A stretch of DNA of 63,837 nucleotides, the filler included, from Reticulomyxa filosa (Eukaryota > Protista > Foraminifera): assembly GCA_000512085.1 (NCBI GenBank). It is 25 parts of 25 records of this genome, joined end to end, with 100 filler letters (N's around TTAATTAATTAA, not from the genome) between each part and the next. Parts side by side here need not be neighbours in the genome. Positions count along the whole stretch, not along the records: positions 8,697 to 11,548 come from ASPP01024748.1; 24 more parts are not named here. The stretch is one strand, 5' to 3'. Position numbers and translations under genes: made by a program. Below are positions 8,697 to 11,548 of this stretch, piece after piece (the stretch's first letter is position 1; every line of letters starts with the position of its first letter). Below the pieces are notes generated by a model that made no database searches, was not told the origin of the DNA, and saw only the letters and a list, made by a program, of their open reading frames with translations.

Positions 8697-9372
8697 ATTC
8701 CTCTCTCATGTAATATACTCGAAGCAATGATAATGATGCACTCATGTTCTTTTCTAAAAATCTTTTCCATAGTTTACTTATTTTATTCATCTTTTCAATA
8801 TATCTTTGATGTATTGGTGCTTCATCAATCAAATCATTCGCAGCAATTCGCAATTGATCTGGAGAGAATGGATATACGTGGACATTGTTTTGGGTGTAAT
8901 GAAATTGACAATATTGTCTTTTCGAAAAAGTCCAAGCTACTACAATATGATATTCCAATCCCTTCCAATTGATTTTCAATGACCACTTCGAATGTCGTTG
9001 TATTTTTATTTTATCTGTACAAAGTTCTTTTCTTATTTTGTCGATAACTTGCTTAATCCATTCGAGAATATCATTGTGTTTTTTTTGGAGTGAATCAATA
9101 TTATTATACTCCAAATGTCTTTCCTTTAAATGATATAAGAATACCAAATATCCACAAGATACATTAGGAATGACAAGTTGTTTTTGTACACACCCAGATA
9201 ATGTCACTCCATAAACACACCAAAATGGGCATTTTTTATCGTAATGAGCCGCTTCTTTGTGTTTGTCCAGTAAACTGTTCACAAGGTCGTTGGCAAGCTC
9301 ATAGTAAGTAGGAACTGTTATATCTTTAAGCTTACTTTCTAATGACTCCTGACATATCCGATTATCCGTCAT
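8697..9372 (-). CDS. OAS/cGAS-DncV-like nucleotidyltransferase-fold protein lacking catalytic Asp residues, 3' truncated by contig end
   Basis: ATG 9372, ~225 open codons. SGCVQKQLVIPNVSCGYLVFL aligns without gaps to OAS [40 protein letters not shown] to RALSF..VEFDVLPAF; MSASLSLLRVYYMR to FSTCFTELQRDFLK. Confidence 0.6.
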
Positions 9373-9579
9373 GTTTAAAAGATATGGAATTCTCAATAGA
9401 GTTTTTTGTTCATTGTTGTGGATTTATGCGTTTAGCATTCAAAGTAATTGATAGTATTCTATTTGATCTTGCACAATGTACTTAATTTTTTTTGCTGCTA
9501 CTATTCTCTTATAAAACGAAATTTAATTTAATCAAAGAAAAGATGTGTAATTGCTTAAGTCTACAGTAAACAAGAATTA

Positions 9580-11548
9580 ATGGTTAATTGTCCTAATTTG
9601 ATGTCTGCATGTAATGTAAATACAGCACCATACACCAATTTATGTGGACTTCGGTTTGGTGTAATATTGTGTGAACAAGATCGCTGGTAGAAAAATATGA
9701 CATGAGTCACCATTATCCAATTCCAAATTCTTATCAATTACTAAGATCACCAATCTTTCTTTTAAATATCTTTGAAACCTCTTTAACATGCAATTAGTTA
9801 TGGACGGTAAGTCGACTTGAATAATTGTTTCAGCACTAAAACTTCTGCTGTCAAACTTACAATATTTTCTCGAAATTGTACTAAATTATATGACAACACT
9901 GTTTCCGGGCACTATGTTTGAATATATATTCATTTACAAGTTTAAGTGATATGTCTTTGGCTGCTTGACTTTTCAGAGGAATTACTTCAACATATCTCGT
10001 GAAGCATCCATTATCGTCATAACGAACAGATAACAATCATCTGTTTCATGTAATGTGCCAACTATGTCAATAGCCACAATTTGGAATGGTCTTATTGCTG
10101 AGAAATGTTGAATTATACAGTCTTTGGACTGACTCTTTCTTTGTCACTTGGCAGGTGAAACATTATTCGCAAAATTTTTTTACATTTATGGACAATCTTT
10201 ATATAATTAAGGTTATTATTCTTTTTGAACATAGAGACTGTGATAACGCATGTGAGTGAAAATAAGCAAGTACGTCATACTTCGACACAACAGGTACTAC
10301 CACTTTGCTTGTACGTGTTAATAAATTTTGTTTATATATTGACATCTACTTTCTTATAAATAATGAATGCCAACTCGAAGAAATGTATATAGTGCGTTTT
10401 TTACTTATGTCAGTTTCCTTTTTATGTTTTTTATTTCGTTGTCATGTCCCTGAGCTTAGAAAGCTTTTTAAGTCGAATAATTAGTCGAAATATCTTATTT
10501 CGATTTTGCATTGAATATCGTTAAGATGACTTTCTTTGTATTTGTGCTTTGTTATTTGATTTTGATAACGATTATGTATAAATAAACGAATATAACTCCT
10601 TTTCTGATTTATGTCAGTTCAACTGATAATTGTCAAATTTCTTTGATTGGAACAAGTTTTCCTTCTTGTATTTGTAGTATTTGTCAGAAGCATCACATTA
10701 AACTATAAATAACTCATTTTGTATTGGATGTAGCAGCTTTGCATTTCAATTGTCTTTTTAATTGTCCAAATATTTCTTCATGTATTATAGCCATTTTCAA
10801 GTCATATCCTTTTGCCGTAGCTGTGATAATTTTGCAGTTAATTCCGCAATATTAAGTATGAAACGTACAATCCATTGAACCATTCCGAGAAATTGTCCAA
10901 ATTTCTTTTCGCTTTGATGCTTAGATATTTTTAATGTTTTGTTTCTGTTGCAATCAGTATGTCGTCTATGTAAATGTCTACATTTTCTAAATCTCTAAAT
11001 ATAGACACAACAATACGTTGAAATGTTGCTAGTGCGTTTAATAATCCAAATCCCATAAGATTTCATTCGTATAACCCATTTGGAGTGATAAATGCAGTGT
11101 TATGTTGGTCTATCTCGCGTATTTGAACATGTAGATATCATGACTTGATATCTAATTTGGAAAATATTTTCTTTTCATTCAGTCATTTATCCTTTTTCTT
11201 GACTAATACTACTGGTTCCGCAAATTGAGAAAAGTTTTTCGTTATTATTCATACTAGTTCTAATTCTTTTACCTGTTTCTTCACTTCATATTGATGTTCG
11301 TGGTTTATAAAGTATAGCTTATTTTTTATTAGTAGAGTTCCAGGTTTCAAATCAATTTTCATTTCTGCATCTCTAAGTTTCACTATGTTGAAACTATTTG
11401 TTGCTAGCAATTGTCGATTTTGTGCATTATGTATTGTACGTATTTGGATGCTTTTTTATTTATGATTGCTATGGCTTTGGTATATATTGGCTTTTTGACT
11501 GGCCATGCACTTTTACTGTTTGGAGTCAATTTCGTGTTAATTGCCTTT
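9580..11548 (-). mobile_element. Degenerate Ty3/gypsy-type LTR retrotransposon pol (RT then integrase) with stops, frameshifts and deletions
   Basis: RT: IDLKPG..FAEPVVLVKKKDK; FSKLDIKS*YLHV..TAFITPNGLYE*NLMGFGLLNALATFQR..IYIDDILIAT (YIDD at 10961-10972). Integrase: CFTCQ, RPFQIVAIDIVG, FTRYVEVIPLK, PETVLS, SPHKLVYG. RT-before-IN order is gypsy-type. Confidence 0.9.

Follow-up and report, generated by a model that had tools for sequence, protein, structure and literature searches.

The window, which is the whole stretch of DNA that was analysed (63,837 nucleotides), includes at 8697-11548 one whole contig of the foraminifer Reticulomyxa filosa, 2,852 bp long and with a GC content of 31%. On the minus strand of this contig, and in the direction of that strand, lie a decayed pol of the Ty3/gypsy type (11548 to 9588), a spacer of 215 bp and an OAS-like open reading frame (ORF) with its ATG at 9372 (Table 1). 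A reading made from the sequence alone had placed reverse transcriptase (RT), integrase and ORF in the same orientation on one contig, and this holds, with pol ending at 9588. The spacer that it described is also present, only its length of ~230 bp has to be corrected to the 215 bp between 9587 and 9373. The strand that bears pol and the ORF is strongly asymmetric in base composition (A 40% vs T 29%).

The pol is, as the same reading stated, riddled with stops and deletions: its 653 codons contain 32-51 stops per frame, and the longest open run is 81 codons. The putative calls of RNase H and integrase, as well as the order RT, RNase H, integrase, come from reading motifs in the translation. 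In the RT remnant, a 43-residue piece bearing YIDD (10972-10961) matches Pfam RVT_1 with an E-value of 8.6e-5, under the gathering score, and about 27 codons are missing after the motif VLVKKKD. The following RT-thumb and RNase H remnant is 85-90% identical to positions 935-1319 of another R. filosa contig, L005. In the integrase remnant, motif reading places an HHCC zinc-finger region at ~10258-10148 and the core from ~10110 to ~9590, with the first core Asp at ~10068 in VAIDIVG, a "PxTNG..ER.N" stretch at ~9850-9790 that reads "P.ITN...R..R.LK", and a tail "W....F.Y......T..SP..L.YG" that ends at ~9590; the C-terminal domain is absent. The ESM Atlas gave a lead to Integrase_H2C2/rve clusters (0.91/0.88), and Pfam, PDB sequence and word searches with the integrase pieces gave no match.

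No direct repeat of at least 40 bp, and so no LTR pair, is present in the window contig, in L005 or in a third pol-bearing contig, L006, and no LTR or PPT was found around these three units. The empty direct-repeat search agrees with the earlier remark that no LTR separates pol from the ORF; as the contigs are short, LTRs might lie beyond their ends. The window pol is a dead, 3'-truncated fragment of an ordinary gypsy element and borders on the 5' flank that belongs to the gene. This attribution of the spacer comes from its alignment, end to end, with the 5' flank of the pol-less copy in L004 (-216 to -5, z 9.1) and with that of the pol-less copy in L007 (z 4.7). The homology begins at 9588, the very point at which homology to the pol of L006 gives out, and upstream of it L004 and L007 show no pol. 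Since pol-less paralogues have it in common, the spacer belongs to the gene and not to the element, and it is probably a 5' UTR or proximal promoter. A match of 20 residues to integrase upstream of the L004 spacer, obtained with tblastn, was rejected because the DNA similarity there is at chance (z ~1). Also rejected was a fixed 5' end of the gene unit near -215 in all pairs, as the limits fall at -43, -78, -101, -216 and -232.

Table 1. Features of the window contig and of related loci on other contigs (positions with an L number refer to that contig).
Feature	Position	Strand	Basis or remark
Predicted OAS-fold pseudoenzyme gene, first 225 codons	8698..9372	(-)	ATG 9372, cut by contig end
5' flank of the gene, 215 bp	9373..9587	(-)	full-length alignment with flanks of pol-less paralogues
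Decayed integrase remnant	9588..10300	(-)	motif reading, ESM-Atlas lead, homology to L006 2660-3231 and L005 1675-1938
Remnant of RT thumb, RNase H (putative) and linker, decayed	10301..10930	(-)	motif reading; internal deletions, stops
Decayed reverse transcriptase remnant	10931..11548	(-)	Pfam RVT_1 match 10934-11062, motifs; cut by contig end
ORF C	L013:1623-2354	(-)	
ORF C	L004:3378-4082		
ORF C	L012:6126-6704		
ORF C	L001:3725-3943		
ORF C	L005:3641-3820		
ORF B	L013:1078-1551	(-)	
ORF B	L001:3997-4443		
ORF B	L006:18-428		
ORF B	L004:4273-4338		
Family gene, clustered/head-to-head	L013:2342-3445	(-)	
Family gene, clustered/head-to-head	L013:3670-4608	(+)	
Family gene, clustered/head-to-head	L001:27-1493	(-)	
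Family gene, clustered/head-to-head	L001:2517-3583	(+)	
Family gene, clustered/head-to-head	L001:6323-7543	(-)	
P0036, relative outside R. filosa	L010:9241-11268		also L011

The OAS-like family, its predicted fold and its active site

The ORF is open, as had been stated, for about 225 codons from its ATG to the contig edge at 8698, a length expected by chance at 31% GC with a probability of ~3e-9. In full-length paralogues, the OAS-like domain spans ~330-365 residues and is encoded by a single exon in the intact copies; for several other family members the protein is truncated or the gene model odd. All 18 matches of a word search are hypothetical proteins of R. filosa, 46-82% identical to the ORF. 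A profile of nine members, run against 1.8 billion representative proteins, matched 26, and of 20 family proteins that were looked up, 16 belong to R. filosa. The other four are metagenome proteins: three are fragments from JGI, and one, of 675 residues, is encoded on a Tara Oceans scaffold in ENA. The family is thus restricted almost entirely to R. filosa. The Tara Oceans protein, P0036, is the only full-length relative outside this species and carries the motifs GGS/NGD/FD; its scaffold (18,962 bp, GC 23%) contains many small ORFs, and a Pfam search of its neighbours there gave a weak SPRY match and otherwise none.

At least five loci have a second conserved ORF, named C, behind the OAS-like ORF and in the same orientation. 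As the gene model P0020 (553 residues) joins both ORFs in one protein, the true gene may extend beyond the OAS-like domain. Some models (P0020, P0015) add to it this C-terminal region and a hydrophobic tail, which are present in gene models only. A further ORF, B, of ~150 residues and ending in ...CFPIQQCQVCN, lies 3' of C in L001, L013 and L004, with 74-77% amino acid identity; in L006 it precedes the integrase remnant by ~2.2 kb. Pfam searches assigned no family to B or C.

Sequence comparison hardly connects the family to known proteins. In Pfam, the window ORF and 18 family members matched no family and, at E <= 1-10, gave no match to OAS1_C (PF10421), NTP_transf_2 or Mab-21, single-sequence Pfam and PDB searches of the window ORF returned nothing relevant, and the nine-sequence family profile had no Pfam or PDB match either. 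The best sequence match of a family profile in the PDB is OAS2, with a weak E-value of 0.02, and there the DGD column of the family falls on the DAD of OAS2. Structure prediction was carried out on the paralogue P0009, which is 63% identical to the window ORF, and not on the cut-off window protein itself. A first AlphaFold2 model built from nine close paralogues (pLDDT 57.6) was superseded by one from an alignment of 27 sequences, which reaches a pLDDT of 90 and a pTM of 0.89. In an exhaustive structural comparison, this model matches porcine OAS1 best (Z 20.2, rmsd 3.6 Å, 281 residues), followed by human OAS2 (Z 17.6), CdnC (16.6) and PAP (16.4), with TUTases, other CD-NTases and cGAS-like receptors at lower ranks. 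Foldseek gives OAS1 as the top hit by TM (0.59/0.59), and the top clusters in the ESM Atlas are OAS1_C (TM 0.68). The predicted family fold is a Pol-beta NTase alpha/beta lobe joined to a helical lobe of the PAP/OAS1_C type, and the P0009 model thereby upholds the description of the ORF as OAS-like, though the likeness is invisible to Pfam.

Compared with OAS1 and OAS2 (PDB 4rwn, 9h1z), the modelled two-lobed fold is alike over 281 of 345 residues, and so is the layout of the motifs, which runs from GS over a DxD strand and a D strand to an "LxKxW...LELL" helix. In contrast, the family is only 13-14% identical to them and without a Pfam OAS1_C match, and the subfamily of the window ORF has all three carboxylates replaced. 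At the triad columns this subfamily has the near-invariant pattern LSGC ... SCGY ... YHI(A/V)(I/V)AW, seen in the window ORF as LSGC, SCGY and YHIVVAW, in which the catalytic residues are changed from D to C, D to Y and D to H, and the GS motif is replaced as well. The catalytic signature G[GS] ... [DE]x[DE] ... [DE] is accordingly absent from the window ORF and present in two divergent R. filosa proteins, P0023 (RFI_14454, EukProt entry EP00480_P025644) and P0027 (RFI_15844, EP00480_P024262). These keep GGS ... DGD ... (F/Y)D(L/I)LVAF, a classical NTase triad in OAS layout, and are reached by the window-family profile at E-values of 1e-51 and 4e-40. With all three carboxylates gone, polymerase activity has presumably been lost, and the motifs suggest that the window subfamily is unable to polymerise nucleotides. 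Of the earlier description as a dead sensor, the replaced triad speaks for the first part.

OAS-like proteins are reported from 8 of 12 eukaryotic supergroups (Culbertson & Levin, 2023; PMC10732462). Among the five R. filosa identifiers shown in the supplement to that work are P0023 and P0027, which appear in its CD-NTase alignments and trees, so the active-type relatives are already part of the literature's data. No main-text literature was found that links Reticulomyxa with oligoadenylate or CD-NTase.

Upstream flanks and selection

Eleven further R. filosa contigs were compared with the window contig, which gave 15 family genes with a readable 5' flank, tandem and head-to-head copies included, and pol was looked for in these ~70 kb of contigs by DNA and translated searches with the window pol. 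It is found upstream of three of the genes, each time on the same strand: in the window contig, where it ends at -216 from the ATG, in L006, where only integrase is present and ends 262 bp before the ATG, and in L005, where it extends from RT to mid-integrase and the homology stops ~624 bp short of the ATG. The remaining 12 have unrelated sequence upstream, either host genes or another family member. A Yippee-type gene lies 260 bp upstream in L002, together with Snf7; genes for an RRM protein (L009), a short-chain dehydrogenase (SDR; L003) and an EF-hand protein (L012) flank other copies, and in L001 and L013 another family gene stands head-to-head. The proposal that the ORF occupies the extra-ORF position of a gypsy element as its cargo is therefore not borne out. 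Nor does pol lie at the same distance from the copies, and unrelated flanks upstream of other copies, which the sequence-only reading itself had named as evidence against its proposal, are what 12 of the 15 genes show.

The pol family occurs at three places only, all of them just upstream of a co-oriented family gene, and the adjacency of pol and gene is commoner than chance. Between the window contig and L006, colinearity runs from integrase into the ORF. In two independent pairs, homology to the pol-less relative breaks off at the 3' end of pol or no more than ~50 bp from it, namely in window/L004 at -216 and in L006/L003 at about -213 to -232. Over aligned non-gap columns, window and L005 are 15% diverged in pol and 31% in the ORF (pS 0.51, dS 0.86), and window and L006 are 29% diverged in pol and 15% in the ORF. 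The ORF tree groups the window copy with L006, L003, L004 and L007 (support 95/98) and places L005 in a distant clade; in a three-way alignment of integrase, the sequence closest to the window copy is that of L005, not that of L006. The comparison of pol and ORF trees that had been suggested thus yields incongruent histories.

Large deletions in RT and a TGA stop at the site NYQLN*HKSEKE are found both in the pol remnant of the window contig and in that of L005. Such common lesions indicate that the pol of their common ancestor was already dead and was copied as DNA, not by its own retrotransposition. A codon-phase test on pol gave no signal of past selection, with low power even on the ORF as control. 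What comes after the ORF in L005 is no LTR but the conserved ORF C that pol-less copies also have there. The loci in L013 and L001, which lack pol, are segmental duplicates of each other whose identity changes from 90% to 72% between adjoining segments, a mosaic that suggests recombination or gene conversion. Taken as a whole, a retrotransposon-borne immune mimic is not supported.

Among ten family copies, pairwise dN/dS ranges from 0.14 to 0.47. On the branch leading to the window copy, 16.5 synonymous and 16.5 non-synonymous changes are counted over 91 and 398 sites, respectively, which gives an omega of 0.23; this is a ratio of 1:1 where neutrality would give ~4.4 non-synonymous changes per synonymous change. 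The window copy is kept as a protein by purifying selection, and these values make it a selected pseudoenzyme. In the earlier suggestion that selection kept the cargo after its carrier decayed, the persistence of the ORF beside a decaying pol stands, at an omega of 0.23, and its status as cargo of the element is not supported.

Origin of the arrangement

The ORF is probably a chromosomal R. filosa gene for an OAS-fold pseudoenzyme, which is under selection and lies beside a dead gypsy fragment without being carried by it. A locus already holding the dead pol fragment would have been duplicated at the DNA level within gene clusters, and the flanks would then have been reshuffled as the clustered paralogues recombined ectopically or underwent gene conversion; segmental duplication and recombination of this kind most likely account for the recurrence of pol upstream of three copies. 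Two observations fit less well: the adjacency is non-random, with pol at only three places in ~70 kb, and homology is lost at the 3' end of pol in two pairs, which simple duplication does not predict and template switching on an mRNA would. Such switching, in which the RT of an LTR element passed from the 5' end of a family mRNA into integrase, so that a chimeric element with the ORF as cargo seeded at least the lineage of the window copy and L006 and the cargo was kept by selection while its carrier decayed, would account for the co-oriented order from pol over 215 bp to the ORF and for the colinearity of window and L006. It would also explain the loss of homology in pol-less copies at the end of pol, as expected for a junction at an mRNA 5' end, and agrees with the single-exon OAS-like domain and with the association above chance. 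We nevertheless consider it very improbable, given the 12 of 15 copies without upstream pol, a different junction in L005 (624 bp before the ATG), the inactivating lesions common to pol remnants, the failure to find an LTR, PPT or direct repeat, and the ORF C that follows the L005 ORF as it does in pol-less copies. Moreover, the window and L005 copies belong to different ORF clades, with 15% divergence in pol against 31% in the ORF and a dS of 0.86.

The three occurrences of pol, at -216, -262 and ~-624 from the ATG and with differing junctions, could also be read as independent insertions by a gypsy family that prefers the promoters of these genes, each insert being truncated later. Preferential integration into promoters is a property of Tf1 in fission yeast, and the incongruent histories of pol and ORF would be expected from it. 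All three remnants, however, are co-oriented and lack both the 3' LTR and the C-terminus of integrase, and internal deletions and a stop are common to those of the window contig and of L005; same orientation, missing 3' parts and shared lesions mark them as copies of one dead fragment and not as separate live insertions, which leaves this the least probable of the explanations. Somewhat less remote, and still improbable, is that a duplication in a repeat-rich region recently produced the window copy as a pseudogene, which has remained open for lack of time. With the contig ending after codon 225, later lesions would be invisible, the nearest paralogue is only ~10% diverged in DNA, and several family members are truncated or oddly modelled. 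Decay of this kind is at odds with the omega of the window branch and its equal numbers of changes, and also with the near-invariant motifs of the subfamily, all of which are intact in the window copy. The chromosomal gene under selection remains the preferred reading, and its product would act without catalysis, as a partner of the active paralogues that binds nucleic acid or has a regulatory role, or as their decoy.

Comparison with known systems

Extra ORFs after pol are known from LTR elements, for example, the env-like ORF3 of Drosophila gypsy and those of plant Athila/Tat, and so is the capture of genes by such elements, as in maize Bs1 and the chimeric retrogenes of yeast Ty1. The window locus resembles the elements with an extra ORF in that pol is followed by an ORF on one strand. 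It differs from them in that no LTR is seen after the ORF, the 5' flank is shared with pol-less copies, most copies of the ORF are pol-less, and pol and ORF show no co-phylogeny. We know of no pairing of OAS with an LTR element. If the capture of an mRNA had taken place after all, a retrotransposon would have acquired and spread an immune-type pseudoenzyme that was later kept by the host.

Nucleotidyltransferases of the OAS type are regarded as immune proteins of ancient eukaryotic origin, and outside animals, to our knowledge, hardly anything is known of them. In mammals, human OASL and mouse Oas1b are catalytically inactive OAS paralogues that have been kept by selection and act in a non-catalytic way, a parallel that suggests a possible role of the window protein as a non-catalytic nucleic-acid-binding sensor, regulator or decoy, working with or against the active paralogues. 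Like these two, the window subfamily has the predicted fold of an OAS together with an inactivated catalytic site and is kept beside active paralogues in an expanded family, and, as in Oas1b, some gene models of the family (P0020 and P0015, in the gene models only) end in a hydrophobic tail. Unlike in OASL and Oas1b, the loss is independent and specific to a protist, and, unlike OASL, the family is without a ubiquitin-like domain. The window ORF is a new, highly diverged OAS-type member in a selected pseudoenzyme clade of a foraminifer, whose family has expanded in clusters that mix members with an intact site and a selected clade without any catalytic carboxylate. It thereby gives OASL and Oas1b a counterpart in a protist and provides a case in which partnership between enzyme and pseudoenzyme can be tested.
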